From positions 1 through 43,248 of the forward strand of contig LPNZ01009482.1 of the NCBI GenBank assembly GCA_001655205.1: a stretch of 43,248 nucleotides of DNA, in the 5' to 3' direction. The notes beneath the pieces are model-generated. The model did no database searches. It was not told the origin of the DNA and saw nothing but the letters and a program-made list of their open reading frames with translations. Of this stretch, positions 15,990-35,800 are shown piece after piece. A program made the position numbers and the translations under genes. The DNA comes from Lenisia limosa (lineage: Eukaryota; Protista; Breviatea). Position 1 is the stretch's first letter. The number at the start of each line of letters is the position of its first letter.

Positions 15990-17522
15990 ATGCAGAATCT
16001 CAAACTTCTTCTTCTTGGAGATGGAGCAGGTCTGTCTCTTCGGCTTTAGTTCATCATTCTGATCAGCACAGAGATAATAATACAACCTTAAACATGCAGT
16101 CATAACATTTACATGTTTAGTTGGTAAGACATGTCTTTTGATTTCGTACACAACCAACTCCTTCCCTGGCGAATACATTCCGACAGTGTTCGACAATTAC
16201 TCCGCAAATGTGATGCTTGAAGGGAAGCCCTACAATGTCGGGGTATGCAGGCTGTTCTGAGTTCAAACTTTCTGGTTTTGAGCAAGTTAGTCAAAAGTGT
16301 ATCAATCCATCCTCTGGATATTCGGTGTTGGAATGAAGGCCTGTTTTTGCTTTGACACCAGCAGCTTTGGGACACAGCAGGGCAAGAAGACTATGACCGT
16401 CTCCGGCCCCTGTCGTATCCGAACACGGATGTGTTCCTGGTGTGCTACTCGGTGTTCTCAAGGTGGGCAATGCCCCAATAAAGAGCTCTTCGGGTGACCT
16501 TGCAAGAGTATATGATATGATATACTCTATATCATATACTATGATGTAGAAATACTACTAATATATTCCTCATTGCTTTGGCGAACATTTCTTATTTTTG
16601 TCCCCTCTTTTATTATTCATTATATATCGAGACTGGACTTTACTTTGTAGATCGTCGTTTGAAAACTTGGACAAATGGATTGCTGAAGTTGGAGAGGGGC
16701 ACTAGTGTTGCTAATGCAAAGAAATAACACGTTCAGGTGAACCAGCACATGCCTGATAACCGCATCTTGATTGTTGGACTCAAATCAGACTTGCCTAGAA
16801 ATGTAAGGGCTCCAACATTCTTGCAAAACAGACTGTTTTTTGTGCTATACATAGTATCATCCATAAATAATATCTCTATTTTGTACTTCTTTTCATTTCT
16901 GAGTTTTCCCCTTGAAGTTGGATTGTCTTTTAAAGGCACCAGTTCAAATCCATTTATGATCTTGCATGTGGCAAATTATCAAGATTAATTGTGAAAAATA
17001 GGTTCTGATTTAATTTGACATCAGCAGTTGCAATAATTGTTGTAAAAGCACTGCTTTTGGATGGGCCAAAAGAAATATGGTCCTAAATGCGTATCGTTTC
17101 CCTTGTCTTGATTCAATACATGTTTTTTTAAAAAAAAACTAATTATCAGGTTCCGACGCAAGAGGCCCGCGACTGGTGCCGACGGTTCGGATACCCGTTC
17201 GTTGAGTGCAGTGCGCTAACCCAGGCCGGGGTCAAGGACGTGTTTGACAAGGCTATTGATGTGGCAACCGAGGTTGGTCTGTTTCATAGTGGTCGTGAAA
17301 TAATGATTCAAAGGCGAATGTCACGTATTGTATTTGGGGCTCCGTGCTTTTTCAGTGACGTTCGTTTCAGTTTTGTTATTCTAAGCTTTCGCCCACATGC
17401 TCTTGAATGAACTATTGGAGGTGATGATTGACATTGTAGGAGAAGGGAACGAAAAAGCGGAAGAAAAAGAGCAAGAAGGAAGCCAAGCCAAAGATTAAAG
17501 CTTCAGAGAAGAAAATTGCAGC
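15990..17522 (+). other. Domain: Rho-family (Rac-like) GTPase 1 with polybasic tail
   Basis: Exons 15990-16029, 16121-16242, 16365-16462, 16651-16687, 16737-16802, 17150-17272, 17440-17522. Motifs [46 protein letters not shown], then KKRKKKSKK. Confidence 0.95.
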
Positions 17523-20500
17523 GTGAGTTGAGATACTGTCATATGCTGTTTTTTCGACTTTTGATTTTTCCATCACACTTCAGCAACCTCAAAAAACTTG
17601 ATCATGCAAAACTTGTCTTTGTTGGTGATGGTGGAGGTAAGCAAAACTTCGCTTTGTCAAATCGTTCCAACTCCTTCAGCTGGTAAAACAAGCTACATGT
17701 ACACATATGCATCTGGCTCGGCCCCTATGGAGTACATTCCCACCGTTTTTGATAGTTACTGCGCCACGGTACCGATTATGGGCGAGCAAGTCACTATTTC
17801 AGTGAGTGTGGCTCGGGAGTTCAAAATCAAGTATCTTTTTGTGATTAAAATAATTGAGTTGAGATCGGCGCGCCTTTGATTTTGGTACAGTTTGGTATAT
17901 TAGTATGAAACTAGAAGTTGCAAAACTGGAAATAATGTTCAACATTCGAGTATTAGATAAGCTTAATGTTCTTTGTTACAAATGAAACGACTAATAGATA
18001 AGCTTAATGTTCTTTGTTACAAATGAAACGACTAATTGTTATTCTGACCGTAAGCTTTGGGACACTGCGCATAACGAAGACTACGACCGACTCCGCCCCT
18101 TATCGTACCCCGAAACGACCTGCTTTATTGCGTGCTATGCGGTCAACAATAGGTTAGCAAACATTAAACTACCTCCACTCATACATTCTGTGACTTACCA
18201 TTACAGTGAATCTTTCAAGCGGGTGTTTGACAAGTGGATTCCTGAGGTTTGTGAACTGAAGAATTGTCAAACTCTTATCATGAACTGAAGAAATGCCGTA
18301 CTCATGTGTTCTTATCACCCAGGTGTTGTATCACTGTCCCGGTACCCCTGTCATTGTTCTTGGGCTTAAATCGGAGGTAGACGACAGACAAGTAAGGTGG
18401 TGCACATATCATATTCTGGCCTTTATCGTCTAACTGGGCCTCAAAATCTTTCATATTCCTAAAGCGCATTTGTTACACCGTCCCCCCAGGTAACTATTGA
18501 AGAAGCGAAGAAAATGTGCCACCAGGCAAAAGTCGGATACTTTGAGGTCAGTGTTCTAATTCAGGGTCAAGTTCACTCATCTCCTATTCTCCTTCTATTT
18601 ACCCCATCAGTGCTCACACTCTATTTACCCCATCAGTGCTCACACTCTATTTACCCCATCAGTTCTCATCACATGCTATTTACCCTATCAGTGCTCATCA
18701 CATGCTAACACAGATGTCAAGGAAGCCATGAATCAAATTCTGATGGGTATGCCACGATATTTTCTCGGGAGGGCTTCACTTCGTTTTGATAAAATATTAA
18801 GCCCTAGGGTGGGAGGGTGCATGTCGTGCTATTTTCGAAAATAACAACAATGATTCAAAACATCTGATAAGTCAAATATGACCAACCTGCTGCCTTTATT
18901 CATCGCGACAATTGACCCTGAGAGTCGTGCTGTAAGTGAACTTCACGATTCTAGTGGCTGGGGGAGGCAAGACTGAGGAGCCGAAGAAAGCCAAACCAGC
19001 TCCTTCATCCAAGTTGGTGGGGTGTCGCTTTACTCTTCTGAGTTTCTTTTGGAAAGTTTGAGCGTTTCTTTCGTTCATTCATATAATAGAAAAAGCAGCA
19101 AATTCCTCATCCTTTCAAGGGACTACTTGCTCAAAGTCTCATCTGATGAAACGGCTATGCCTATTGCCACGTCATCAATCAAAAAAGCGGCTAAGACCAG
19201 AAAGGCACTTGTTCTGTCTCCAAATGAACAGATCGAAGTTGCTGTATTCGCCCCCGAATTCGGTGGGGGGTGCGATATTGTTACATTCTTCAAATGACAA
19301 TCCAAGCCCTCATTTGTTTGAGACTTATGAAGACTACTGGTTTGACTTTTGACCATATTCCCTGTTCCTAGGGTTTCACTTCGGTAGAAAAGATGTAGCT
19401 TCTCACGCAATCAGAGAAATTCAGCAAAGTGTTTGGAGAGCCGAAAGCCTTCTCCTTCGATGTCGGCAATCTGACATATGTCAACTGCTCCCGTAGGCGG
19501 AGTGGAAAAGGGGAAATTGGGTAGAACAGAATGATACGTCACTGATGTGGGTAAATGGAACAACAATATTTAAGAACTCTCGAGACATCAGCTTTCTCCC
19601 ATGTGTTAATCCAGCTTAGACGGCCGACATGATGAGTATTGCAACTTTGGAGTCAGTTTGGTAGTTCACGAAGGAGACATGGAGACGTGGACCCAAGCTG
19701 TTCACTCCATGATGGCCAATGTGGTAGGCCTTTTGTGACGTCGGGTCCCACAAATGTTCTAATGCTCTTGAATAATCTCTACAATATCAAGCTTTTTGGA
19801 ACAGGGGGTGAATGTGTATTGAATTTAGTAGTGATTGTTTAAACCAATATCCTACCCACAAGACTCACATCTTCAGCCCCACAGTGTTTTCAGCGGCCAA
19901 CACCTTTTCACTATTAACTTCAAAAAGCAAAGCACTGCTGTTGATGATATGAACCCTCGAGAAATGGTCTGTTGCAAAAGCTATCACTATTACTATAATG
20001 TCGTCTCATGAGATGGGCTTTATTGCAGAAAATGACAGATTTTTAGGATTTCCAGGTGAAGTATGAGAAGTTTTGTGCCGAAGCTGGGTTGACAATCATA
20101 GAGGTGCGTGGTTAAGTTTTTGTTGCAGAGTCGATTTGAAATTTTTTAAACGTGATCGTGGGATATTGTAGTTACTCCTCCTTATGCTTAAGACAAGAAA
20201 TCATAACCCACAAATCCATCTAATTTGCTCCAGAGATCAGGTACAATTGAGGGTTCGCTTTTCAAAGCCATAGGAGACAGAACAATGGGGGATTTCAGTG
20301 GGTGGTGGTGTCATAATACAGAAACGATGAATATACTCTCCTTTCAGTTGAATAACTCTCCGATTAGCTCTCTTTTCAATTGAATAGCTCTTCTTTCAGT
20401 TGATTAACGCTAAATAGCTCTACTTCCAATTGATTGACTGGTTCAGAAAACTCGGCAATGGGACACACAGATTCAATCTTCTCACTTGAGGTATTCTGGG

Positions 20501-23500
20501 GAGCCACAGAAGCAGTTTAGAAGTGTTAGCCATGAATTTATCAATATCTTTTAGCCATGATGGTATGTACACCAAGGCTGATACACCCTTTTTAGCATTT
20601 CTCGTCTGCACATCTGAAATTGATCAAAAAATAGTCTACAGAGACCTTCTCTTATTCTTACCGCCCAGTACCACGAAGGATTCCTCTACTCAGGATCACG
20701 AGATCGAACGATCAAACAGTGGGACATTTCGACAGGGCTGTGCACGGCAACATTCACAGGGCATAACGGCCAGGTTTGTGCACTGCTGATTAACTGACCT
20801 TCAGATTCTGTGTATGGCAATGGACAGCAGCAACAATATGATGGTAGGCTGCTCTTCATTTCAACACAAAAGCAGGTTGAATTTCTTGATCAAACCAAAT
20901 ATCAAATAAAAAATGATATCTATCTGTCTTGGGAATGTAATCAAGTTCTTTTTGGAAATGTTTAGGGCTTCCCTACGGTCCGAAAAGACCATCAAAATAT
21001 CGATATTTATCGAGACTATATTCAGACTTTTTTTGAGACTGTGGGGAAGCCCTAGTAAAGATAACCTATGCTTTCAGTGACGAGCCACTTTTACGTTTTT
21101 AGGTCAGCGGATCTGCTGATGGTTCTGTCTGCCTTTGGAGCCTCAGAGAAAAGGGCCAAGTTTCGGTTTGTGGTGGTAGCAATACTCACGGCAGTCTCAA
21201 CACTACCGAATTATATGATATCAATCAATATCATATGTACTAAGTATCGATAAATCTAGTTTTATGGAATTGAACAGAAGCCCAAGTGTTTGTTCTTTTT
21301 GAGGGAGAGACCAGAAATTTTAAATCAAATCTAGGGATGCAAAAGACTAAATAGGAATATCCAAGCTACCCCCCCCCTCAAAACCCACAATGACCTTGAC
21401 CCTTGAAGCCGCGAGCAACGGGTCAGCACAACGAGGCGGTCAACGCTCTCAGTCTCCTCGGCAACACCCTCATCACCGCGTCATCCGACAAGAGAGTCTG
21501 CGTGTGGGACCTCACAACCGGCTCTTCGGTCCTCACAAAGCCGGTTGCTTCCTTCATGTACGCTGTCAGTTTCAATGGCTGATATCGCATGTATATCATC
21601 TTTCATGTAACCAATTATAATTTATTTTGATCACCAAGCAGTTGTGGATTTCTCACCCCTCAGAGCCCCAGACTCGATTATGTCCATGTGTGTCGTCGCT
21701 GCCTCCATGGCATATAAGGCCTTCATTATTGTCTGTGGGGGTAATGTGATGAATCAAGTTCGAACAAGACCAGCATTCTTGAATATGAGATAATTCCATT
21801 CCATGACTTTATAACCCCCAAGGCTGCCGGATGTAAGGACGGCTCAGTCTGCTGCTTCCTGTCATCTCAAATTGATGCTGAAAACTGTTGGTGGAAGGGG
21901 GTTCTGGGTAATCTACTTGATTACCTTTACATAATAATAACTACGTTTAAATCTTTCATTAAATTCTCCATAAATATACTGGGAGTTTTACTGACCAACG
22001 TTATCATTATAACTTCTGAAGTCACGGATATTGCCCCTCAAGCAGTCTACCGCTACCACTCTGCTTCAGCCAACTACATGGTCGCCTGCAGTGCTCGTCC
22101 ACCTGCAAATGAACGTGGTATGCTCTTTAATCTCATTTTTGCTCATTTCTTATCTAAAGTTCTTTATTGTTGGCAAAGTATATAAGCCTTACCATCAGAA
22201 GAGGGAGGGGGTACACCTTTAATGTCACATTGAGCTATTAATGCAATAGAGTTTGTCCTTTTTATCACAATGACCCTCTCTGCACTTAACTCTAAAGCAT
22301 CCACCGCGAACACCTTTGTTGGGGGCGGTACGAACTTCACCTCCACCAAGTACGCTAAAGTGATGAAGAAAGTGACTTACTTGTGTTTGTTTGTGTTTCA
22401 ACCCTTGCTAGTCAGGCCTATTTTCTGTATTTCTACTTTCCGTTTATTTGTTGTCAATTCAGTGATATTGCAGGTTTGCCCCTGGAAAAGCGGAGCTGGT
22501 GTACCTTGTGTCCGGTGACAGCTCAGGCGGACTTGTGTCATGGGTTGTGAGCATTGTCTCCGATTCTCTTATGGGAGTAAGAGGGCTTTCAAAAGGGATT
22601 TAACAATGGAGTATTTTATATCAAGAGGGCTTCTAAAATGCTGATTTTTTTATGAATCCTCAATAAATATCCTGACGTTAAGCCACAATATGAAGCCCGA
22701 ACCTTATCGCCTCCAGATGGCAGCAAACGGCGGTATAGCACCCCATGATGACGCGATCAACTANNNNNNNNNNNNNNNNNNNNNNNNNNNNNNNNNNNNN
22801 NNNNNNNNNNNNNNNNNNNNNNNNNNNNNNNNNNNNNNNNNNNNNNNNNNNNNNNNNNNNNNNACTGCTTTGTCATGACTCTGTAGCCTCAAGAGACGGG
22901 ACCTGCAGGCTGCTTTCGTTGCCGACTGGCTCGGTTGTTCTGAAGATCGACACGCTTATCACTTCGCTGCACGCAACAACTCTCAGATCCGTCTTCGTGA
23001 CCGACGAATGCATTGTGAGCTTTATTGGGCTCAAGTTTCATGGTCCACAATGTTGTTTTTTCTTTTCCTTTTTTGCTCCACAGATTGGTATCACCTTGTC
23101 CCCCATTAAATATGAGGTCGTAGTCCTTTTGGTACACTGCTTTCTTATTGCCCAGTACCTGGCCTCCAAAGACGGCCGACTGAGGTGTCACAGTTTGATT
23201 GATGATGGAGAAGAGGTAATGTTGGCCCTAAAATTGTCAAATTCGAGGAGATAACAGCCACTCTCCATATTGGGTAGATAACTTGAGGCTCATTCCTCAG
23301 GTCTGGGCCAAGGATGGGCATGTCGATTACTTGAACCGCATCATTGTCGCTGAAGGGGCCGTCTATAGTGCTGGTATGTTGAGGCACTGGGCTTTTCCAT
23401 CCATTGTTGATTGTTTACTTGGCCCTTTTGGGTGGTGCAATAATTGAAAAATTATTTTTGGTATTTCAAGACGGTCATTTTGTTACAGAAATTCCTTTAC

Positions 23501-26500
23501 AGGCACTTTGATTTCAAATATCATCAGTCCATCCCTCCAAACAATGAGTCCCTTCACACTCAAGGCCGAGATCGAGTTATCCGAAAGTGGAATGCCAAAA
23601 ACGGGTCCCTTCTGAGAGTGTTCTCCTCACCGACAGAGCGGAAACCATGTGAGTGCAAGCTTGATTTTTTTTTATCATTAATTTCTGACTTCTTGGAAGG
23701 GGTAGCATCAATATTGTTTTTCACCATCTTTTTTCCAAAACCTTATTCCTATGTTATGTTGTGTGTTATGCACTTATTCTTTTATGCACAAGGTGAAGCA
23801 TTATTCTTTTGTTATGCTCTTTAGTGGAGAGAGCCCCAAAGATTGCCGCCTGGGTTGCCTGGTTCACTTTCGCGTTTGAAATGCTTCAGTTCACCTCGTT
23901 TGCCTTCAATGAAAACGTCAACTGGTGGGCTTGTAGCTGTTATTGGGAGAACCCCACTTTTGCCCGAATTAGACTGATACCTCTCGAAAAACTGTGTGAT
24001 CAATTAATCGAGTAATATTTGTCCCAAGCAGCAGAGATTCGATTGTGTTCAAGAGCTCCTTTTTGCAGTAAAGTCTCTCTTGAAATTAGGATCATAGAGA
24101 TCCGGCAGTTGACTGTACACAAAGAAAAAAACCCGCAGAAAACGACAGAAACAGGACTTCACAACAGTAACTCTTTAGGCCTTCATGGCACCCCCTGACA
24201 GTCCTCCTTCCGCCTCTCGCCCTCAACATCACCATCCCATCTGACTGGACCACGCCTGTTCTGGCTGGGGCGTCTTGCTTTGTGGGTCAGCCTTCTTCCT
24301 CAATTTCACCTTTGATTTGATTGATTTCAACCATAACAAGATTGTGTGTATTCTGAGCTGCATTATGCTTCGTTCTTGATTTCCAACATTTGTGCCTATT
24401 TAGAGGATTCAATAATCATATCGTTTATGGCCCCACGATGCCCTTGCTGACATCTTAGACGCTACTCTTCCTCTTTATGTTCTACCTGGCATCATCATTC
24501 AAAGGAGCGATCCCAGGATCGTTCATGTCCAAACTTTGGCCTCTTGCTTCTGGTAAGTCCCTTAATTGGGCTCATCTAAAAAGGTGTTGGCAACATCTGT
24601 AGTTAAAAAAAAAGTGATAAAAGTGGTATTTTATAATCAAAATTAAAAAAATAAATATTAATTTTGCTACTACAGGCATTTTTTTAAAAGAGCCACCTAT
24701 TTTTAGAAAAGCCCTAAATAGCACAGTCTATGACACCACAAATGGACACTGTCGTCACATAATAGACTGAATTCCCGATAAATATCGATATTTTGACGGT
24801 CTTTTTTGGACCGCAGGGAAGCCCAAGTCGTCACACTTCAGGCATCTGTTACTCCGGCTCCACAATGCTTGTTGTCCCCACCGCTCGTACGTTGTATCTT
24901 CAGGCATCGTGTGACAAGTCATGTGATACTGTGGGGGGGTAAGATGTTAGTCTCTGTTGTCAAAGACTGGTAAATATCGTTATTGTTCGAGACATTCGTT
25001 TTGGAAACACCTTACTTGTGTAAGACACTGAAAGAGAATTGGTTGGTTGTGCGATATTGCAGGAATGAAATGAATAACGTTTCAGGATGAAGATTGGGGA
25101 GTGGCCGTTCTTGCTGGAGTTCTCCTGCTACCCTACATTCTGACAGTTTTACGCCTTGTCCTGGTAGGGGGCTTCGTTTGGCAGTGAAGTTCATAATATT
25201 TGACTAAGTACACACTATAATAGGATTAAGTGTTATGTTGAGGCCTTCCCTTCAGCATCCAAAAGGACCTCTTTTCATGACAATGTCCTTTCTCAGATTG
25301 GTACTTTGCTCTTTTACCTTCAATATGACTACTCAAACATCCCCTGAGTAGCACATACCATATCCTTGTCCGCAATTTGTCAGACTTAACCAATGAAGGT
25401 CAACGGCATGCTGTCGCGTGTGGCAGTGTATCTCAAAATGAAGTGGTCTGAAGTGAGGGGGGGGGGCAATCAAGGAACGCAGACTTTTGTTCGATTGTAG
25501 TTCTATTCGAATTCTCAACCTTGAAATTACTCACCATCAGGACTCCCCTAATCTAGCTCGTGTGCACAACGCCTCCCTCCGCTCTGTCATGATCAATGTT
25601 CCAACGTATATCGTATGTTGGGCTTCACTTTGGGACGAAAAAAACGGGGAATACCGATATTGTGTAGTTTGCTATCCAAACATTAGATGAATCCTTCGTA
25701 TCATATCAAATGCTAACCTGCACCATTTCGCAACGTTGCTGGAAGGTAAAATAATGAAAACATTCGTCATTTCATCCATTTCAGTTCAAACTGCTTCTTG
25801 TTGTGGTATTTGTCAGCCTTTCCACTGACAATGCTTCAACACTCTCAGTCCTCAACGCCCTCGTACTTCCCCTCTTCATCTTCATCGTGAGTAGAGCTGA
25901 GTCTAATTCGTATTATTTCGTCAGAAACACCTGATTACAGAGAGGTGAAGAATATTACGTGTTAGGATAATTCCTTGATAAATCATCAAACTCGATACTA
26001 TAACTGTCGTAGTCTCCACCCCACTTCAAGACCTCCGCAAATGTCAGTCGATTTACGGCCTCATTCCTCGTCCTTTTTGCTCATGCATCGGCAAGGTATT
26101 TTTCGGGAGTAAATGGGCTTCACTTCGGTTCTAAAAAAACTGAACTATTATTTAACAAATCTTAAAAACAATGCATAAGTATAATTTTGGTATTTATACT
26201 TTGCCACATCCAGTCCAGACTCAAGCCAACTGACCGCGCAGGTTCCTTTTGGCATATCCGGAATACAGCGAGGAAGTAGCGCAGATCCACACGCTAGCTT
26301 CGGCCGCGATGGTGCCGATTTGCTCGCTACTGATGTATAGTCGCATCAAGTCCATGCAGAAGTCCTTCAAAGTCACCCGAACAGCCAACATGATTGCTGA
26401 GGTTGAAGATATGAAGGTGGCCTCTTCTCCATGTAACAGTCCTGGGTGTCTACTAATCATAAATGAGATGTGAAATTCTAGTATTACATGTTTACTGTAG

Positions 26501-26936
26501 ATATTGGATAAATAATTCCATCTTTTCTGCCTAATACGGCCGTCCCCCACACCCATCCGCTGTAACCCCGCAGCCTCCGACGCTGAAGGAGCTCGAGGAA
26601 TCCTCAACCACTCAAAACGGCGACTCGGGAGACTCGTTCTTCTGTGACGTTTGCGGCAGCAAGGTGGGGGGGTCTAGGTTGTCTTCCATTTGAACATCAT
26701 TTTTTGAAGTCTTTGGGAACAAAATTCATTTCTGCAAGTATATGTTAACGCATATATTATTTTTGATATGTAGAGTGGTATTTTCGAAACCAGGCGAAGT
26801 TCAATTTACGAATTCCTATGAGTTGCTTATGTTATGCTGTGTTAACCTCTATTAGGTTCCGCCAGCAATGTGGGATAGTCACCAGGACTCCCTGAAGCAC
26901 CAAGAAAACCTGAGTATCAAAGCGTCAAGACTCTAG
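15990..26936 (+). CDS. Multidomain protein: Rac-like GTPase + degenerate second Rho domain + PH-like + WD40 repeats + multi-pass TM domain + C2H2 (U1/matrin-like) finger
   Basis: About 40 exons joined in phase from ATG 15990 ([40 protein letters not shown]) to TAG 26934-26936. One N gap (22764-22863) interrupts the WD40 region. Some joins use weak donors (gtctgt, gttggt, gtacgc). Confidence 0.7.
17954..18035. repeat. Exact 41-bp tandem duplication in an intron
   Basis: tagataagcttaatgttctttgttacaaatgaaacgactaa x2. Confidence 0.95.
18595..18706. repeat. ~26-bp intronic tandem repeat (ctatttaccccatcagtgctcacact), about 4 copies
   Basis: Direct inspection; fills most of intron 18566-18713. Confidence 0.9.
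18770..18806. mobile_element. MITE family 1, internally deleted mini-copy
   Basis: agggcttcacttcgttttg...aagcccta; both ends retained. Confidence 0.7.
19369..19393. mobile_element. MITE family 1, solo TIR
   Basis: tagggtttcacttcggtagaaaaga. Confidence 0.65.
20447..23650 (+). other. Domain: WD40 repeat region
   Basis: [10 protein letters not shown]|[19 protein letters not shown]; GHNGQ|ILCMAM...[13 protein letters not shown]; [11 protein letters not shown]...[12 protein letters not shown]; AAGCKDGSV; [13 protein letters not shown]; ASRDGTCRL; ASKDGRLR; [11 protein letters not shown]. Confidence 0.92.
20963..21054. mobile_element. MITE family 1, gcttccct subfamily, full copy
   Basis: tagggcttccctacggtcc...gtggggaagcccta. 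Confidence 0.85.
24764..24824. mobile_element. MITE family 1 partial copy (gcttccct subfamily)
   Basis: agactgaattcccgataaatatcgatattttgacggtcttttttggaccgcagggaagccc. Confidence 0.75.
25621..25665. mobile_element. MITE family 1 partial copy
   Basis: gggcttcactttgggacgaaaaaaacggggaataccgatattg. Confidence 0.55.
26115..26146. mobile_element. MITE family 1 partial copy
   Basis: gggcttcacttcggttctaaaaaaactgaact. Confidence 0.7.
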
Positions 26937-27030
26937 TCCATATTTAGATGAATGTGAATGTAAGATTGTACCATAGCAATGAACGTTACATTGGCTCGAA
27001 GTCTTGATGGGATTCTTGTGTACCAGGCGA

Positions 27031-29430
27031 TTACTTCAGAGCTTGCCACCCTACAACTGTGGGCAGTCGGCCATATTCCTCAGTGAATCTGAACAGTCAG
27101 GCTCAAGAGCTCGAATATTGACTGTTTTTTCTCATAAAACGACAGGTCATCATAATCATTAGATTTGCAGCCCATATATCTTTCAAAAGACATCCAACGT
27201 CATGCCCCCTCCCCACTCCTCCTCATCGGTGCTACTCGGATTGACATCTTCCATCTGAATCGTCACACCACAAACAATGAACATTAAAAGAAAGGATGCC
27301 ACAGTATATCTCAATGAGAAATAAAAAACTAGTATCTGCCCGAAGCCGTCCACACCATCCCGCTTATCAAAGATATTGGATTATAGTATAATATTAATTC
27401 ACCCAATCATTTGCCTTACTCTGTGCACACAGCTTTTTGTGCCAATACTATGCTCTCACTTCTGTTTAAAAGAGGGGTGCACACAAATTCTTACTTGTCC
27501 TCTATTTCTCCACACCAACCTTTTCAGACTCTAAAGGAACCAGTTCTGACGGACAAAATTGTCTACGAAATAAGCGTTTCTTTCTTGAATAAACTATGTG
27601 CTCAAACTTCATTCACACAATAATCGACCCTTCTAACATGAATCGCTCCTCCATTCTCTTTAGTCTTTCATTAACATCCATTTTAGGCTCTTGACACAAA
27701 CGCTCCCCTGCAAAATAAGCATTCAAGAGGTACTACAATCGATATTCTTTTTTGGTCAAATCGAAAAAAATGGTGCTCTTTTTCCTAATAATAAACAACA
27801 TAAACTGCCGTTTTGTCTAACCAGGGTTGCCGTACATCACAAATGAGGGCCCAATCGTAGAATCAGAAGGAATGTGCGTTCCTGTGAACGTCAAGATATG
27901 ACAAAATCACGATAATTTATTTACCAAAGCGAAACCTTAGATATTTTTGCAGCAAACTTCATACTATTTAAACTTGGTGCTAAGGTAGAACACACCAACA
28001 CCCAGTCACCTGGTAATATGACAGCTCCTTCTTTGATAACCACTCGTTCACCCTATACGAGGTCATCAAGACATGGTATCGCCAAGACCTACAATAACAC
28101 ATCTCTCGCCGATGTGACACGCTTTTTCCAGCACTGATGCCTGGATTGATGCGCCTTTTCCAATGAAAACGCAATCCTCAATTTGCACCTTATGGTATCG
28201 CGTTCTGACGGAATGACGTTCCAAAAGGCCCCAAAAATCAGTTAACAAAAAACAATATAATATACTATGTCTAATGATGACTACTACGTGTTGACATGGG
28301 TGTTTTTTCTTGTAATATTTCTCAGATCATCCATTTTTATTGTTTTTGGCTTTCCTGAGAATCAATTCAATAAATTGGGGGAATCAAGGCATTATCTGGT
28401 TCAAAAAAACACAAACAAACAAGGAGTGTCTAGGGTTTACGCATATAGTATATGATATACCGTAAAAGCCCGAATTTAAGCAACCATTTATTATAGCCCC
28501 CCCCCCCCCGCTACATGTCATCTGGTGAGGATTGTTTCACTNNNNNNNNNNNNNNNNNNNNNNNNNNNNNNNNNNNNNNNNNNNNNNNNNNNNNNNNNNN
28601 NNNNNNNNNNNNNNNNNNNNNNNNNNNNNAGTATAACATCAGAAGAACTACATTTGTGAGCTTTTCGCAGTTCTCTTCCAACACAATCCTCCCTCCCAAA
28701 AACCACCACCTTTCTCAACATTTCACCATGCCCACGCTTCACCTTTCTCAACATTTCACCATGCCCACACTTCAACTTTCTCAACATTTCACCATGCCCA
28801 CGCTTCACCATGCCCACATTTCACCATGCCCACATTTCACCATGCCCACNNNNNNNNNNNNNNNNNNNNNNNNNNNNNNNNNNNNNNNNNNNNNNNNNNN
28901 NNNNNNNNNNNNNNNNNNNNNNNNNNNNNNNNNNNNNNNNNNNNNNNNNNCATTTCACCATGCCCACATTTCACCATGCCCACATTTCACAGTACTTCCC
29001 AACGCGGATGTCAGAGAGGTCACTTCGAATCACAACTCTTGGATGGACAATGCACTAATATTGACATCAGAAAATTTTGTACTAGATCTCTTTTGTCACT
29101 GAACGCAAGCTGAACAAACCTTTTCAACAACCAAGAACCTTCTGCCATCCCTAATCTTGGACTGTCGCGACAGCAGGCTTCCGCCAACATCTGGAAACTG
29201 TCAAAAGAATGGACAGACGATCCCAATTCTTCTCCATTTTTAAGCTTTCTCTCCCAGTGGAAAGGTTCAAACCTTTTCTTAGTTAGTGTATAAAAAGTGT
29301 CATTGACAGAAAAAAAAAGGCATCTGGAAGGGAAGATATGTCCCAGAATTCAAGCCCACACACTTCTCCACTCAGTGGGGTTATACGAACGCGGCTGGCT
29401 GGAAATATTTTCATCCGTTGAGACACGCAT
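27031..29430 (-). CDS. DCTN5: Dynactin subunit 5 (p25), left-handed beta-helix protein
   Basis: Exons read GGSLLSRQSKIRDGRRFLVVEK|CIVHPRVVIRSDLSDIRVGKYCEI...TRYHKVQIEDCVFIGKGASIQASVLEKACHIGERCVI|GERVVIKEGAVILP|GTHIPSDSTIGPSFVMYGNP. This is colinear with p25 as I recall it (SRQS, IRGDL.VRVG, HIGDHVFI, VGKNCVIG). Probable ATG 29430. One exon is partly in an N gap. The stop is either 27565-27563 or 27033-27031. Confidence 0.85.
27332..27443 (+). repeat. Dispersed repeat family 4, copy 2
   Basis: Shares aagccgtccacacc with copy 1, agatattggattatagtat with copy 3, and ctctgtgcacacagcttttt with copy 1. Confidence 0.85.
28709..28989. repeat. Intronic minisatellite (catttcaccatgccca 16-mer within ~35-bp units), partly collapsed into an N gap
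   Basis: Direct inspection. Confidence 0.9.
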
Positions 29431-29851
29431 CTAAAGAAAGTTAGCATCAAAACTGCTAATTGATTCCATTCAATACGCCAAAAAAGATGAAATCGACTTA
29501 CACTGAAAAGTGTCCAAAACAGCGAACAGGCTGAACTCAGATTGTTTTTATTTATAGTTTATTTAACTTAATTTAGGCTTGATTTAAAAAGTGGAAAGGT
29601 CAAATGGTCAAAGGGATGGTTCCATGGACAAAAGGGACTACAAAGTTCCCGGTACGGCACCTTGCTATTCCTCCGAAAAAATCATGTCTTTTGTCCTTTA
29701 GTCCTTTTAATAAGAGTAACAACCACAGGTTGGTGTGTGTTGTGTTTTCTTCGTCTGTGCTCTGCATATACACAGCATAGTTTGTTGGGGGAGGGAAGTG
29801 ACTCATTTTTGTGATCGACGCATGCATGTCACAATCGCAGAAAGACCTCAG

Positions 29852-32800
29852 ATGTTCTCACCCTCTTCGCTCCTTGTGACCTTTATTACGTTTGTGTTAT
29901 TGATCCAAAATGCCGTCGGCTCAATTGACGGAATTGCCCAGTCTCCTCTTCTTCCTGTTCATTTAGGCGGATTCGCCTTCTTTGAGGTCAGTCTGGCTGG
30001 TTTTTTTTTATTCCAGTGCCCTCCTTTGTACTTTGCGTTGTGTTTGAGTTACAAAACAGAAACAGAGAATCTCTTCTTTGGTTTTTGTCTTCACTCCATC
30101 CTCTGACGGCTGTTTCTAGTATATCTTTCCCAAGAACGAGACCAGCCCAGGACATGGTGTTGCCATCGGACTGAATGCCAACGGATTTGTAGCCGAATTC
30201 GCTTTCGATTTGGGTGGGGTAGGTTGTCACACTGGTCCTCAAGGAGGTGTTTGGTGATCTTATTGTTTCAAATCTCTTTTCCACCCGCAAACACTGGGAT
30301 CTCCCTTCCCCTTGTGCTACTCCAACACTCTTCAGATGGTGGTACCAGCAACTTTGAGATTCTGAAAACGGGCTACCTCGGCACTAAAATCGCCTTTAAT
30401 GACAGGCAGATGCATAACAGCCGGCATGTGGTGGGGGGGGGGGNNNNNNNNNNNNNNNNNNNNNNNNNNNNNNNNNNNNNNNNNNNNNNNNNNNNNNNNN
30501 NNNNNNNNNNNNNNNNNNNNNNNNNNNNNNNNNNNNNNNNNNNNNNNNNNNNNNNNNNAAATATCGATAGTTTTCGAGGATTTATCGAGATATTCAGTCT
30601 ATTTTTAGAGCGAAGCAAAATTTTACCCGAAACAGACTGTTGGCGCCTGGCACTTTTTGGCCTTGGACATCGGCACGGGCGTTCTGATTGTCATCAACAA
30701 GGACACTCTTCAGGTTGGCAAGGGATGCTATAGTTTAGTGGTGATACTATCGTTTAGTGGCGATGTTGTGTGAGGGGTTGGTGTTGCTGCTTTTCCGCTG
30801 ACCTCTTTAGAGCCGAGTCTTCACCACTTTGAATCTTATCACTCAAGAGTAAGACCGGGCTCACTTCTTCTCACTTTTCCAGTGAATATATTATGGGGAC
30901 AGTTTACATCCCGGCACGTCAGCATTTGTTGATCTATGGATCTGACCTGGCTGTTGCTGCGTTTGATATTTCAAACCCCCTTTCTCCCTGTAGGAGGGGG
31001 GAAAGGACTTACCCTTGACACTTGGATTATTCATTTTCACTCCACAAACACCAGTTCCCCTCCCGTCACATCTTGGAAATGACTCTATTTCTATCCCTGT
31101 TTTTCTCTCTCGATTTGTTGACCTTCCAGCCGCCACCGCCTCCGCTGAGCCTCTTCATTTGAACATAATTGATTCTTGTGACCAGGTATGGGTACAGGGG
31201 AAAAGCATTACCGGAGTATCCTGACGTGATGACTTGATTCATATCATATAATACTAGTACTATATTATGGTGGGGGTAAACATGGTAACTCTTTTTTGCA
31301 GTGTAGTTTTTATTGAAACCATTAGTGACTAGGGCTTCACTTTGGTTCGTAAAAAGACTGAATTACTCAATAAATCCTCGAAAACTACCGATATTGTACT
31401 GGTCTTTTTCGAACCGAAGTGAAGCCCTAGTGGTAACTGTTTTCATTGAATGCACATCCATATGGAGTAGTCACTGTTAGCTCTTGCCTGCTACCTGTTG
31501 TTCTTACCAACATCAACATTTCACCCATGCCAGAGTGATGGGATGCGGTGCTGCCTGGGCTTTGTTTTTTTTTTGTTTTGTTGTTATCAACCCTCGTGTG
31601 TTGTTAGCCAACAGAGTTGATTTTGGGCTTTTTTTTTTGTTTCATAAATTTTCCAATTTTACCCCCCTCCCCATCAGGTCCACGCTTTGAGTTTTATTAA
31701 CTTTAATGGCTATGACGTGGCCTACTTGTACTTTTGCCAAATAGGAGCCACATTTACCTCGACGTTCCAATCTGCCAGCTTTGACGTGAGGGGAAGTCTT
31801 GCTGGCACAGCTTTTCTAGTCAAGGCTTACAGATATGAATGTTTCATATCTACTGTTAGCAACCTTCACTCCCTTCGTAGGACACAACCTTCACGCTGAC
31901 CAACGTTTCGCCTTTTGACGTTCCTTTAACGGTGGGGGGTAATCGTTTTTCTTGTTCCATCTCGGAGGCTAAATGCTACTCACGCTACAATTCCCATCTT
32001 ATTTCTCTTCAATTTGACAACACTTTGCTTTAGGTTACCTACTGATATGGTCCCAATTGACCCTTTTGAATTCCCCCTGACTCGTAGGATTTTCTGCCTT
32101 TTGGGGTCCCTTCCAGTTATGTGTTGTTCGTGCCTCCAGCAATGCGTCTTTATATCGACGGAGTCCCTTCCACCCTTGGAGTTAGTGTGGCTGCTGCTGG
32201 TGGTGGTGATGATGATGATGGTTGCGATGAGTTCCCGTTTCCCTTCTATTGACCTTTGTTAGAGTTATTGCGACCCCGCCGAACCGCTCTACCAAGCTTC
32301 TGACAATGTTTACGTGTGTGATGATGGTAATTCCAATGTAAGAGGGGGGGGGTGACAGAGGTTGAGTTATTTTGGGATTCAATTCAATTCGCCTTATTAT
32401 TGTTCTCCTACTCTATTAACCCCCCCCCCCCCNNNNNNNNNNNNNNNNNNNNNNNNNNNNNNNNNNNNNNNNNNNNNNNNNNNNNNNNNNNNNNNNNNNN
32501 NNNNNNNNNGCAAAAACTGCCACACAATCCGTTCTCACCGATGGCTCGGACGCGCCCTTCCCAGTAAGCCGGTTGATGTTAATTGCGTTGGAGGTAGGGC
32601 TTCACTTCGGTTCAAAAAAACTCGGTAAAATATCGATAATTTTCGAGGATTTATCGAGAAATTCAGTCTTTTTTTGAACCGACGTGAAGCCCTACTGAGG
32701 GGGGTGGTAAAGGAAATTGTAGCAACATCATCTATTTCTTGCACTATGTTAGTAGCGCCAGTCCAATCCAGAGTGTTTCCTTTCTAACCTATTTCCCTTT

Positions 32801-35800
32801 TTGTATGTGTGTGTGTGTAATTTATTTTCCCTTGCACGCAGTTATTCACTTCTCCAGTTGGGTCCGTCAACTTTCTTCGTGAGAGATTACCAATTTGCAC
32901 AAATTGCCGCATTAGAGGTCTGTAAGGTCCCCATCTCCTCCAGGTGCCTCCCAGCTGCTTTTCACCCCTCACAGAATAATGGTTCTGTCACAATTGGCTC
33001 GAAGTTCTACCATCAAATTGCTCCCGATTTCCTTCAGTCTGAAAGGGTGAAGCCAATTTCGGACACTCTTGGTGTGTTCACCAGCGATGTGAGAGGGGGT
33101 ATCCGCTTGTGACACTGTTGCGAATACTTATTTAACATTTTACTATTTCCTTTCCTTCATGCTCCCCCAGTATTCCATTTCGTTTGTGGAGCTGCCTCTG
33201 ATGACTATTCTGCAATCTTACGCGTGAGCCGGGGGTGAGATGTGACACAAAAGGAGGGGGTGATTCCATTTTTGGAACGTCAACCAGGCGTATGGTATTC
33301 CAACTGCTTGCTTTCAGCTGTAAGGCGGAGTCCCTGTTGGCCTGGTAGTCTCACTTTTGCGACTCCCTTTTTATTGTCTCAAATTCTCCTATGGCTGGAT
33401 TAATATATTTTATTTATTTTGTATTTGTAACTAGTTATAATTCCTCATTTTCCAGGTTTTCTGCCAAGAGGACAACAATCAACACCACCCAGAAAATCAA
33501 CTTCCCAGGCATTGCTGTCTGTTGACGACATTTATACTGTATTCTTTGTCTCAAATACCGTGTACTTACAGACCACCTCATGACCCCCCCCCTCCAGGTT
33601 GACCGTTCTCGTGGAGTGGCTTACACGCTGGTTGGAAACACATTTTATGCCACTCACTCCGATCAAAACCTTATCATATCTTTGGAGGTAGGGGGGGGGG
33701 GGACTAAATTGCTCTTATTTCGGATAGAAATTGAGGAGGTAAACAGCTTGCCTATCCTTTGATTCTAATCCGCCTCAGGCTGCTGACGCCGCTACTGACA
33801 TGCAAGGGGTGGTTGCCAAGCAGGGCGAGGACACTGTTTTCGTTGTTGTGAGTGGAGATGGTGTTATGGTTGGAAAGCGTTTTCTTTTTAGCGGCTTTCA
33901 ACTCACCCCACAGACCTTGACTTCGATCTACGAAATGCATTTCAACCCCCCATCCTACTCAAAACTCAGAGACTGGGTCCCCACCGGAGGCACCAGCACT
34001 ATCCGATTCCACCCCGAGCATGTGGATCAATGGGTCTGATGGAGGTCTCTTTGAATCGTTTTTTGACTTTCAGCCTTTTTCTGAATTCTCGTTCTTTCAA
34101 TTGGTCCCCTTTCTAATCCTTCATTTTTTCCTTCCTCACAGGGCAATCTTCGTGGATTAGAGCGGTCAACTGCTACGGATAGAAACGCCTACCCCTTCCT
34201 CTTGGTGAGATACTTATTTATACATATATCTCCCACGATCCCTCTTTTTTTGCTTTGTCTATTATTCCGATGTGGTCTTGCAACTACAATTCGTCACCCT
34301 TCCCTCAGGGAACCACAGTGGACCGATTTGTGAAGGGCTCGCGTGTGATGTCAAGCATGGCAGTGTTTATGGACTCTGACGAGGCCTCTGAGCCTTATGC
34401 TGTTGCTTTCCATAGGTCAGGATTGACCCTGCTGGAGTTCAGAGGTAACTTGGCAATTTCAAATTGGAATTCTACACTTACCCTTTCCTTTTGATTTCAA
34501 AAGATTCTCATCCCCCTCAGAAAACTACATTTCAACTGCCCAGGAAATCTACGCTGATGCTTTCATGATTGATAGACTGGTGTGGAGGAAACAGCTTTGA
34601 AACTTGATTATCTGTTCCTCCTCTCTTTAACATCCCTAGGCCATTGGACAAGGTACTGTCGCGTTATCCTCATCTAACCCGACTGAAATGCTGGTTTGTG
34701 GAGTGAACGCTGCTTGCTGAACTGTTAATACATAGGAGATTAGTTTAGTTAGTGGTAATGAAATGAACCTCGAGAATATCTCAAATTATGTGATTCTCTT
34801 CTATTGTTTTGCAACAAAACTTTGCTTGAAAATTCCACATCTCCTTCTGTTGTCCCCTCTGAAGGATTTGTTGAATCACAACTTTCAGTTCACAAGCACT
34901 GCCGAAATGAAGACAATTTCAAATGTTGGGGGGGGGGGTGATCAGCAAGTGAGAGTTTTTGTATCTACCTGCCCTCACATTGAACCCCGCTTGAATTCTG
35001 CTTTTTGTCAACCTGGTAGTTTGTTCTTTCGCTTGTTCTGTCCTTTTATATCAGGGCAGCATCAGGACTTTCCCTATTACAACTTATCTTACTTGTTCAT
35101 AATAAATTCTTTACCCCCCCTCCACAGACCCAGGAGTTGAACTACCAGTCAGCACCCTACACGTATTACTTCCACACCTTCGCTGTAACCAGTCCTACTT
35201 CTGTTATTTTGATAAGTCTCGACGACATCATGGTTCATCACATCGAACTCCAAACAACTGCTGTTTGTCAGGTGAGAGGGGGGGGCGCCACTGCTGTCTA
35301 TCCAGATTAATAAGCTATTGAATTGAGATTTTTGGATTCACAGAGTTGAGAACTCCGAATCTTCCCTCATCCCCCCCCCCCCNNNNNNNNNNNNNNNNNN
35401 NNNNNNNNNNNNNNNNNNNNNNNNNNNNNNNNNNNNNNNNNNNNNNNNNNNNNNNNNNNNNNNNNNNNNNNNNNNNNNNNNNNNNNNNNTCTGAGAGCAA
35501 CTGTGGTTCATGCGGCAGCACTTGCAACGGTTCGAGGGTCGTGATGAGTCGTTTATGATAGTGGATATTCTATCATATCACAGCAGTATTACTACTAACC
35601 AAATCCCATATAGGTAATGTTTTTCCTGATACGGTGGAGGTCACGGCGGAGGTCATGACTGTTTTCTCCTTCTGACAACCCACTTTAAACTCACCACCTT
35701 GATCCATCAAAAACAATGACAACTCTTCTATATCATAGAATGCTGTTTCTCATTCCACACAGCCCTTGACGAATACTGCACGGGTACCCGTTGTGCCTCC

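Follow-up and report, generated by a model that had tools for sequence, protein, structure and literature searches.

The stretch of DNA analysed here (the window, 43,248 nt) carries on its plus strand, from 15990 to 26936, 48 short exons in colinear order with 47 introns between them; in our gene model they encode a product of 1,345 aa and are closed by a TAG stop codon (26934-36). The domains follow each other in the order Rac-like GTPase (Rho1), Lys-rich linker, degenerate Rho domain (Rho2), PH-like region, WD40 propeller, transmembrane (TM) helices and finger (Table 1). A previous sequence-only reading had listed these elements, and Pfam and PDB matches, hydropathy and the sequence itself put all of them on the plus strand where that reading had placed them, the PH-like label apart. 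About 30 of the 47 introns are backed by polyA RNA contigs, comprising the stretches from Rho2 over the following linker to the PH-like region and from the exon preceding the propeller into the WD40 exons, introns within the TM block, and the connection of the TM block to the finger. The gene model was constrained to join the RNA-anchored exons, so that the in-frame chain alone proves nothing. The RNA contigs leave three intervals uncovered, one at each of the links L1 (16945-17541), L2 (19333-19929) and L3 (23419-23991).

Table 1. Features of the Rho-WD40 locus and its 3' neighbour, with positions counted from the first letter of the window
Feature	Position	Strand	Basis
Rho1, Rac-like GTPase domain, 6 exons	15990..17272	+	Pfam Ras, PDB, RNA joints
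Rho1 exons	15990-16029, 16121-16242, 16365-16462, 16651-16687, 16737-16802, 17150-17272	+	
Lys-rich linker exon	17440..17522	+	sequence; no RNA cover
Link L1, putative 61-nt intron between Rho1 and Rho2	17523..17583	+	GTGAGT...TCACACTTCAG
Rho2, degenerate Rho-like domain, 7 exons	17584..18746	+	RNA joints, PDB
Linker and PH-like region	18955..19723	+	RNA joints, gene model
Link L2, uncertain stretch	19724..20103	+	gene model; RNA from 20069
WD40 propeller, ~8 blades, 16 exons	20234..23648	+	Pfam WD40, RNA joints
Assembly gap	22764..22863	+	L001 6592-6693, X2 contig, gene model on filled sequence
Link L3, putative 176-nt intron, final WD blade to TM helix 1	23649..23824	+	splice scores, composition
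Multi-pass TM domain, 10 exons	23825..26416	+	hydropathy, RNA joints
Cytosolic tail with finger	26574..26936	+	RNA joints 26416^26574, 26663^26856; zf_UBZ
3' part of convergent neighbouring gene	26937..27720	-	RNA contig, sequence, translation

Rho1 is joined by RNA at 16242^16365, 16462^16651 and 16687^16737. Its translation, which includes ECSALTQ, shows the G boxes GDGAVGKT, the T in YIPTVFD, DTAGQE, LKSD and CSAL, so that G1 to G5 are intact except for the LKSD in G4, and the catalytic residues of G1-G3 and G5 are retained. The single exons match Pfam Ras with E values from 4e-11 to 6e-9, and the best solved relative is Rac1 (PDB phmmer, 7e-21; 74.7 bits over 40 aa). For the exons of Rho1 and Rho2, all of the 60 best PDB matches shown are Rac, Cdc42 or TC10. 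The helix known as the Rho insert, typically ∼13 aa between G4 and G5, is absent from both domains; the junction at that point is predicted in Rho1 (16802^17150) and proven by RNA in Rho2 (18391^18490). In both, G4 and G5 lie 24-25 residues apart, which is a Ras-like spacing; from the G4 Asp to the G5 Ser it amounts to 24 residues in Rho1 versus 39 in Rac1. A CAAX box was sought in all readings of Rho1 and none was found: if the linker exon is left unspliced the frame ends in KKIAA followed by the TGA at 17524-26, and if 17272 is read through it ends in HALE and a stop. As modelled, the Lys-rich linker between the two GTPase domains is 40 aa long.

Rho2 is covered by RNA joints at 17801^18055, 18152^18207, 18246^18323, 18391^18490 and 18546^18692, and its best solved relatives are Cdc42 and Rac1 (PDB phmmer, 6e-7). 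Since intron positions are common to Rho1 and Rho2, the two domains are tandem duplicates. While G1 (GDGGAGKT) and G2 are kept, G3 reads DTAHNE, G4 LKSE and G5 CSSH, i.e. the glycine and glutamine of G3 and the aspartate of G4 are lost. Probably, Rho2 is either a pseudo-GTPase or a partner that is permanently loaded. The RNA contains neither a stop nor a CAAX box at the end of Rho2 and continues through the linker into the PH-like exons by the splices 18746^18955 and 19012^19120, two joints that the sequence-only reading had anticipated; the TGA at 18913-15, named there as a possible terminator, sits inside an intron that is removed in RNA. Of the exons downstream, 18955-19012 and 19120-19262 are supported by RNA, while 19415-19492 and 19620-19723 are predicted. 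For the PH-like label, which is tentative, one weak Pfam match was obtained, PH_alsin (E 0.027), on a stop-free stretch; among the clean exons of the region no PH-type profile matched.

About eight WD units, of the ∼40-aa type with GH...WD signatures, can be read by eye in the model of the propeller. One exon (20669-20773) exceeds the Pfam WD40 cut-off of 27 with 30.2 bits, exon 21409-21555 reaches 23.7 bits, blades 4-5 are degenerate, and the later blades are degenerate and gave no Pfam match. A generic WD40 match was also obtained with Beta-prop_SCAP (E 0.0035). RNA joints were observed at 20103^20234, 20297^20447, 20490^20669, 21557^21664, 21730^21823 and 21886^22022, of which the third, proposed before, is supported by a loose end of 10 letters. 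The arithmetic of RNA depth supports exons 20805-20843 and 23156-23220; the former, a 39-nt exon after a 31-nt intron, completes blade 2.

The propeller is interrupted by an assembly gap. A metagenome contig (L001), which agrees with the window at 100% identity on either side of the gap, supplies 102 nt, and a further contig (X2) bridges it with the same length. The first 38 nt of the fill are exon (...INYLHSGYGGGNCAT), and the remainder, which contains 11 G in a row, forms the beginning of an 87-nt GT..AG intron whose donor lies in the gap, whose end is at 22886 and whose acceptor is at 22887. Read straight through, the filled gap meets a TGA, while removal of the intron keeps the frame and yields a good WD blade. 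This stop, the position of the gap in mid-propeller and the degenerate blades 4-5 could indicate a decaying or mis-assembled locus, either a pseudogene or a chimera across the gap. We consider this highly improbable, as two contigs with identical flanks bridge the gap, a canonical intron removes the TGA, and polyA RNA is correctly spliced on either side. Moreover, all 48 exons are in frame, no frameshifts or stops were found within RNA-proven exons, and the RNA/DNA difference seen once, at 18706, is synonymous.

Hydropathy predicts 7-9 helices for the TM block, six of them strong and two to three weak. RNA joints 24552^24842, 24930^25086, 25163^25399, 25886^26013 and 26095^26242 connect its exons, and depth arithmetic supports 24281^24459 and exon 25541-25612. 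The whole protein had been proposed to be a receptor, channel or transporter; the multi-pass domain is indeed present, but it matches no known family and the functional label is thus unsupported. Pfam, searched with nine TM exons up to an E value of 1, returned no family (a match to DUF2809 is at chance level), PDB searches with the TM exons found nothing, and the tail exon of the TM block retrieved only the locus itself from 1.84 billion protein representatives; the family searches were run exon by exon, so that a distant match of the whole domain could escape them. The finger in the tail contains FFCDVCGSK and follows the pattern C-x2-C-x11-H-x5-H, which is split by an intron. Its match to zf_UBZ is weak (E 2.4e-4) and, with 21.1 bits, misses the cut-off of 25.6.

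Downstream, the transcript of a convergent neighbour, whose CT..AC introns occupy 27089-27216 and 27255-27519, overlaps the 3' end of the Rho-WD40 gene, and the RNA contig continues past the stop codon. Both stops are only ∼90 nt apart, and short intergenic spacers therefore occur here. The genome is compact.

Whether the chain from Rho1 to the finger belongs to a single gene depends on the three links. In L1, the putative intron contains the TGA at 17524-26, which is overlapped by the donor GTGAGT, and, only 17 nt behind it, an in-frame ATG (17543). Its donor scores 3.5 and its acceptor 6.0 on matrices built from the introns of our own model chains, the L1 intron included; the composition is intron-like, and the RNA-proven acceptor at 24842 has the same motif, TCACACTTCAG. 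In L2, the chain between RNA-backed exons is uncovered from 19262 to 20056. The predicted exon 19877-19966 and exon 20056-20103, which is covered by RNA from 20069 on, have the lowest coding scores in the chain; in the latter, the WD frame is open for 36 codons upstream of the first Met. In L3, the donor GTGAGT behind CAT scores 5.4 and the acceptor 3.7, and the composition is the most intron-like of all intervals (-0.41 per codon). TM helix 1 starts right at this acceptor with no ATG before it, and no polyA signal AATAAA or ATTAAA occurs in 23600-23900. The joints formerly proposed at L1 (17522^17584) and L3 (given as 23650^23825, in the present model 23648^23825) hence stand on good splice signals, outside RNA cover.

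The same links would be the borders if two or three adjacent genes on the same strand had been wrongly chained together, a possibility of some weight, although we hold it to be rather doubtful. For example, a gene for Rho1, perhaps with Rho2, and the PH-like region could end near 19738, and one for the propeller, with or without TM block and finger, could start at 19949 or at a Met before WD blade 1; in addition or instead, a separate gene for TM block and finger could start within 23751-23825. All three links lack RNA cover, reading through meets stops at 17524, 19736 and 23822, the exons beside L2 score low and genes are tightly spaced in the region. ATG-initiated alternatives can be constructed, since starts may formally be placed at ATG 17543 for Rho2, at MNPREM (19949) or the Met directly ahead of WD1, and in an MLC mini-exon (23751). 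However, every boundary falls on a good donor/acceptor pair of compatible phase, and the spacers of 17-200 nt are intron-like and, around L3, free of the polyA signals. Separate genes would also leave TM helix 1 without a start codon and Rho1 and Rho2 without a membrane anchor, and the 36 open codons before the first Met of exon 20056-20103 speak against them as well. Given splice signals, intron-like composition, the missing CAAX box and the missing start before TM helix 1, we favour fusion at all three links. That Rho1 to finger form a single gene, as the sequence-only reading had claimed, is plausible and our preferred interpretation, because RNA shows Rho2 spliced onward, the exon preceding the propeller joined to WD blade 1, and the TM block spliced to the finger and the stop; this part of the claim stands on RNA, while at L1 to L3 it stands on arguments from splice sites and composition.

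With somewhat better than even confidence we thus propose that one 48-exon gene encodes a polytopic membrane protein of ∼1,345 aa. Ordinary Rho GTPases are small, prenylated proteins that move on and off membranes via GDIs. Here, the cytosolic N-terminal part would consist of Rho1, Rho2, the PH-like stretch and the ∼8-blade propeller, and the 7-9 membrane helices may replace the prenyl anchor, given that a CAAX box is missing from every reading. A Rac-like switch fixed in this way to one membrane would escape extraction by GDI, and next to it the pseudo-GTPase and the propeller, as a scaffold, might read the GTP state of Rho1 locally. In an amoeboid flagellate, such a local readout could, for example, steer actin at the anchoring membrane, and the UBZ-like C2H2 finger in the tail could couple the protein to ubiquitin-dependent sorting. 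This mechanism is inferred throughout; the TM domain belongs to no recognisable family, and the PH-like and UBZ labels stay below their thresholds. If there is one gene, its product could also be a conflict or innate-immunity sensor, in which the WD40 repeats would form the array that senses the ligand, and the N-terminal pair, one domain intact and the other degenerate, would give the signalling output. This is improbable, as a STAND-type NTPase and a death-like or TIR effector are missing, and to our knowledge Rho GTPases do not act as immune effectors of the sensor type.

If the proposed membrane-anchored switch is correct, GTPase signalling would be tied firmly to a single membrane protein and would not depend on recruitment through prenylation and GDI cycling. 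A Rac-like domain that is a permanent part of a multi-pass membrane protein, together with its degenerate copy and a propeller, would represent a natural experiment in wiring a switch to one site. A full-text literature search found no protein of such architecture and eighty metagenomic Rho loci contained nothing beyond the Rho domain; like the search with the tail exon, these results agree with the suggestion of the sequence-only reading that a combination of tandem Rac-like GTPases and WD40 repeats ahead of a multi-pass TM domain is undescribed. The chances seem evenly balanced that this is the first Rho-family switch within a polytopic membrane protein, in which an active Rac-like domain and a pseudo-GTPase partner are tethered via PH-like and WD40 regions to an orphan domain of ∼8 helices. 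Breviates branch off close to the root of animals, fungi and amoebae, and if the DNA is from a breviate, the locus bears on the early variety of Rho signalling in that region of the tree. Its value is limited, as the protein seems to be lineage-specific.

Compared to classical Rac1 and Cdc42, Rho1 has a P-loop and switch I/II near those of Rac1, but it lacks the Rho insert helix and the CAAX box and forms one chain with over 1,100 additional residues. Roco proteins (LRRK2-type, Roc-COR...WD40) also combine a small GTPase and a C-terminal WD40 domain in one large signalling protein, and here, too, regulation may be intramolecular or dimer-based. However, the GTPase of the locus is Rac-like, kinase and LRR are missing, and Roco proteins are not polytopic in membranes. 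Pfam Roc matched with 13.5-24.4 bits, short of its cut-off of 27, and in every case scored lower than Ras; no COR domain was found among the scanned exons. A cytosolic WD40 propeller and TM helices on one chain are known from Sec12/PREB and SCAP, yet Sec12 is a Sar1 exchange factor with one TM helix and in SCAP 8 helices precede the propeller; similarity to either was restricted to the generic match to Beta-prop_SCAP.

The locus seems to be a lineage-specific variant among the atypical multidomain Rho proteins and would extend their short list, which includes RhoBTB and Miro. RhoBTB is likewise an atypical, unprenylated Rho protein, whose C-terminal extension is large and whose GTPase cycle is altered, but it is soluble and carries two BTB domains, of which no match was found in the locus, in place of the WD40 propeller and the TM helices. 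Miro shares two GTPase domains per chain, the first of them Rho-like, the lack of a CAAX box and a TM segment of its own as anchor. In Miro, two pairs of EF-hands separate the GTPase domains, the second domain is not Rho-like and the anchor is a single C-terminal tail, whereas here no EF-hands were seen, and tandem Rho duplicates joined by the short Lys-rich linker are followed by the WD40 propeller and the multi-pass domain.

The gene model at 15990-26936 on the forward strand rests on a window that is eukaryotic and intron-rich, with a G+C content of ∼42% and 16 runs of N. The stretch is represented in two runs of the same 2016 study, a polyA metatranscriptome (X1) and a DNA-like run (X2). 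Furthermore, an ENA metagenome locus (L001) matches window 16173-33260 at 100% identity and supplies actual bases at the N positions of the window. The size of an N run is a poor guide to the true length: the runs at 28542-28629, 28850-28950, 30444-30558, and 32433-32509 comprise 88, 101, 115, and 77 N, but 12, 25, 61, and 48 letters in L001. At window 18706 the genome has T and the RNA contig C (GCT to GCC, both Ala), a synonymous difference that is likely allelic. Gene calls on the ENA contig (L001 6050-7084, 7150-7845, and 10001-10330) run through TGA and introns. Since these calls ignore introns, the database proteins of the organism are unspliced artefacts that mask the real proteins in sequence searches. 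One of them, P0001, is an unspliced ORF called on L001 from the same DNA as the gene studied here.

For the gene model, RNA joints served as anchors, codon and splice-site scores were trained on the anchored exon chains, and intervals without RNA were filled by a dynamic-programming search. The training chains also contained a few joints inferred by eye, including 17522^17584. The final model consists of 48 exons, spans 1,345 codons and terminates in a stop at 26934-36. Of its 47 introns, ∼30 are backed by evidence from RNA joints, loose ends or depth arithmetic. The depth arithmetic, used as a check of exon size, takes the X1 depth of a bin as the product of contig depth and covered bases. 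It assigns 72 nt to the exon within 25520-25710, for which 25541-25612 is the sole fit; a 126-nt candidate was ruled out, since the RNA depth demands 72 nt. According to RNA record 4, an exon of 39 nt with CAG before it must lie between 20773 and 21103. The sole candidate that satisfies this, 20805-20843, encodes 13 residues that complete WD blade 2 and lies directly behind a 31-nt GT..AG intron (20774-20804). A minimum intron length of 40 nt was dropped, since it misses this exon. Acceptors in this sequence carry a branch-point-like CTGAC, CTAAC, TTGAC or CTCAC only 5-9 nt before the AG. The longer introns contain very high-copy short repeats (20958-21015, 24060-24134, 24770-24830, 26115-26140, and 27332-27400), with summed X2 depths of thousands to tens of thousands; the copies at 20983-21015 and 24773-24805 are inverted and 94% complementary. 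These repeats may be MITE-like or introner-like elements.

RNA contigs and the convergent neighbour of the gene, with positions in the window
Feature	Position	Strand	Remark
RNA island 1	16183-16762		
RNA island 2	17722-18710		
RNA island 3	18691-19170		
RNA island 4	20069-20678		
RNA island 5	20697-21150		
RNA island 6	21443-22079		
RNA island 7	~22948-23364		
RNA island 8	24239-25165		
RNA island 9	25152-27088		
Convergent gene, 3' part	26937-27720	minus	ends ...GWQALK* near 27028; CT..AC introns 27089-27216, 27255-27519

The sequence-only reading had proposed a single gene across the whole region. Its exon architecture and domains were confirmed, the PH-like label excepted, and its claim of one gene is supported in part. 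RNA joins the last Rho2 exon to the linker and then to the PH-like exon, so that the TGA at 18913-18915, past which an in-frame continuation had been predicted, is indeed intronic. Transcripts ending before the WD or TM blocks had been named as evidence against one gene; RNA joins the pre-WD exon to WD1 and is continuous from the TM block through the finger to the stop, but three links, Rho1 to Rho2 (17522^17584), PH-like to WD (19262 to 20056), and WD to TM (23648^23825), each lie within a zone of zero RNA coverage. At the first link, a GTGAGT donor includes the TGA stop, the 61-nt interval closes with TCACACTTCAG, a motif identical to the RNA-proven acceptor at 24842, the TGA is only 17 nt from the next in-frame ATG, and there is no CAAX box. 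The link from WD to TM has a strong donor (score 5.4), its 176-nt interval is by composition the least coding-like of all intervals, and TM helix 1 begins directly at the acceptor with no preceding Met. The link from PH-like to WD is the weakest of the three: 3-4 exons are predicted there without RNA cover, two of which score low for coding, and plausible alternative starts are present. Taken one by one, the WD to TM link is highly probable, the Rho1 to Rho2 link nearly as much so, and the link between them still probable. The full one-gene fusion is somewhat favoured, the main cautions being that the model was forced to connect and that gene spacing is tight.

Tight spacing is seen at the 3' side, where the end of the convergent gene is ∼90 nt from the stop of the studied gene and an unstranded RNA contig fuses the overlapping 3' ends of both. 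A spliced 3' UTR past the stop was rejected; the introns there are CT..AC and thus belong to the convergent gene.

Rho1 (aa 1-162) shows the complete set of five G boxes (GDGAVGKT, T of YIPTVFD, DTAGQE, LKSD, and CSAL), its switch exon matches Rac1 best (7e-21), and a Lys-rich exon follows. Rho2 (aa 190-354) has the motifs DTAHNE, LKSE, and CSSH, and its best match is Cdc42/Rac1 (6e-7). Since the intron positions of both domains are identical, Rho2 is a tandem duplicate. The Rho insert is absent from both domains, where G4 and G5 lie 24-25 residues apart, and no reading of either domain gives a CAAX box. The Rho2 introns hold tandem repeats at 18594-18697 (26-nt unit, 3.9 copies) and 17947-18036 (41-nt unit, 2.2 copies).

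The PH-like stretch (aa 374-482) ends in a Trp-containing helix and gave a single weak profile match, while Pfam found no match in its four exons. Pfam detects WD40 in two exons, and ∼8 blades are visible by eye, the middle ones degenerate. The propeller contains the assembly gap 22764-22863, which corresponds to 102 nt in L001 (6592-6693) and has this length also in an X2 contig that crosses it. Both supply the gap letters but not independent confirmation, because both probably share their source sample with the assembly. Read straight, the frame of the filled gap runs into a TGA. In the splice model, a donor ACTG/GTATGG lies 38 nt inside the gap. Paired with the acceptor ATGACTCTGTAG/CC at 22887, it defines an 87-nt intron, the removal of which yields a well-formed WD blade with the frame unchanged. 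A 48-nt intron behind the G run, with signals of 1.6 and -1.2, was rejected in favour of the 87-nt intron, which beats it on signals and on the WD blade. Both flanks of the gap are thus continuous, and the canonical 87-nt intron puts them in frame. This intron includes a run of 11 G, which presumably broke the assembly.

The TM block (aa 973-1264) comprises six strong and 2-3 weak helices by hydropathy. No match was obtained with Pfam for nine TM exons or with phmmer against PDB for two. Exhaustive phmmer of the TM tail exon (58 aa) against 1.84 billion representatives yielded no homologue, only P0001, from the gene's own DNA, and P0002, a low-complexity chance match. The top ESM Atlas scores for this exon (0.71) were uninformative, and a metagenome scan gave 330 pattern matches and 0 relatives. 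The tail pattern is C-x2-C-x11-H-x5-H, with a weak UBZ-type profile match.

Scanning metagenomes with a Rho2 stretch retrieved 80 loci. Every one of these is an ordinary single Rho gene without a tblastn match to the 985 non-Rho residues of the model, and a literature search for the domain combination found nothing relevant. In its way of working, the protein most resembles the atypical multidomain Rho proteins; the gene model lacks the defining features of each family. Unlike Miro with its EF-hands and single tail anchor, RhoBTB with its BTB domain, Roco with Roc-COR, and classical Rho proteins with their insert and CAAX box, the model has none of these and instead places Rho1, the Lys-rich linker, Rho2, the PH-like stretch, WD40, the TM block, and the finger tail in this order.
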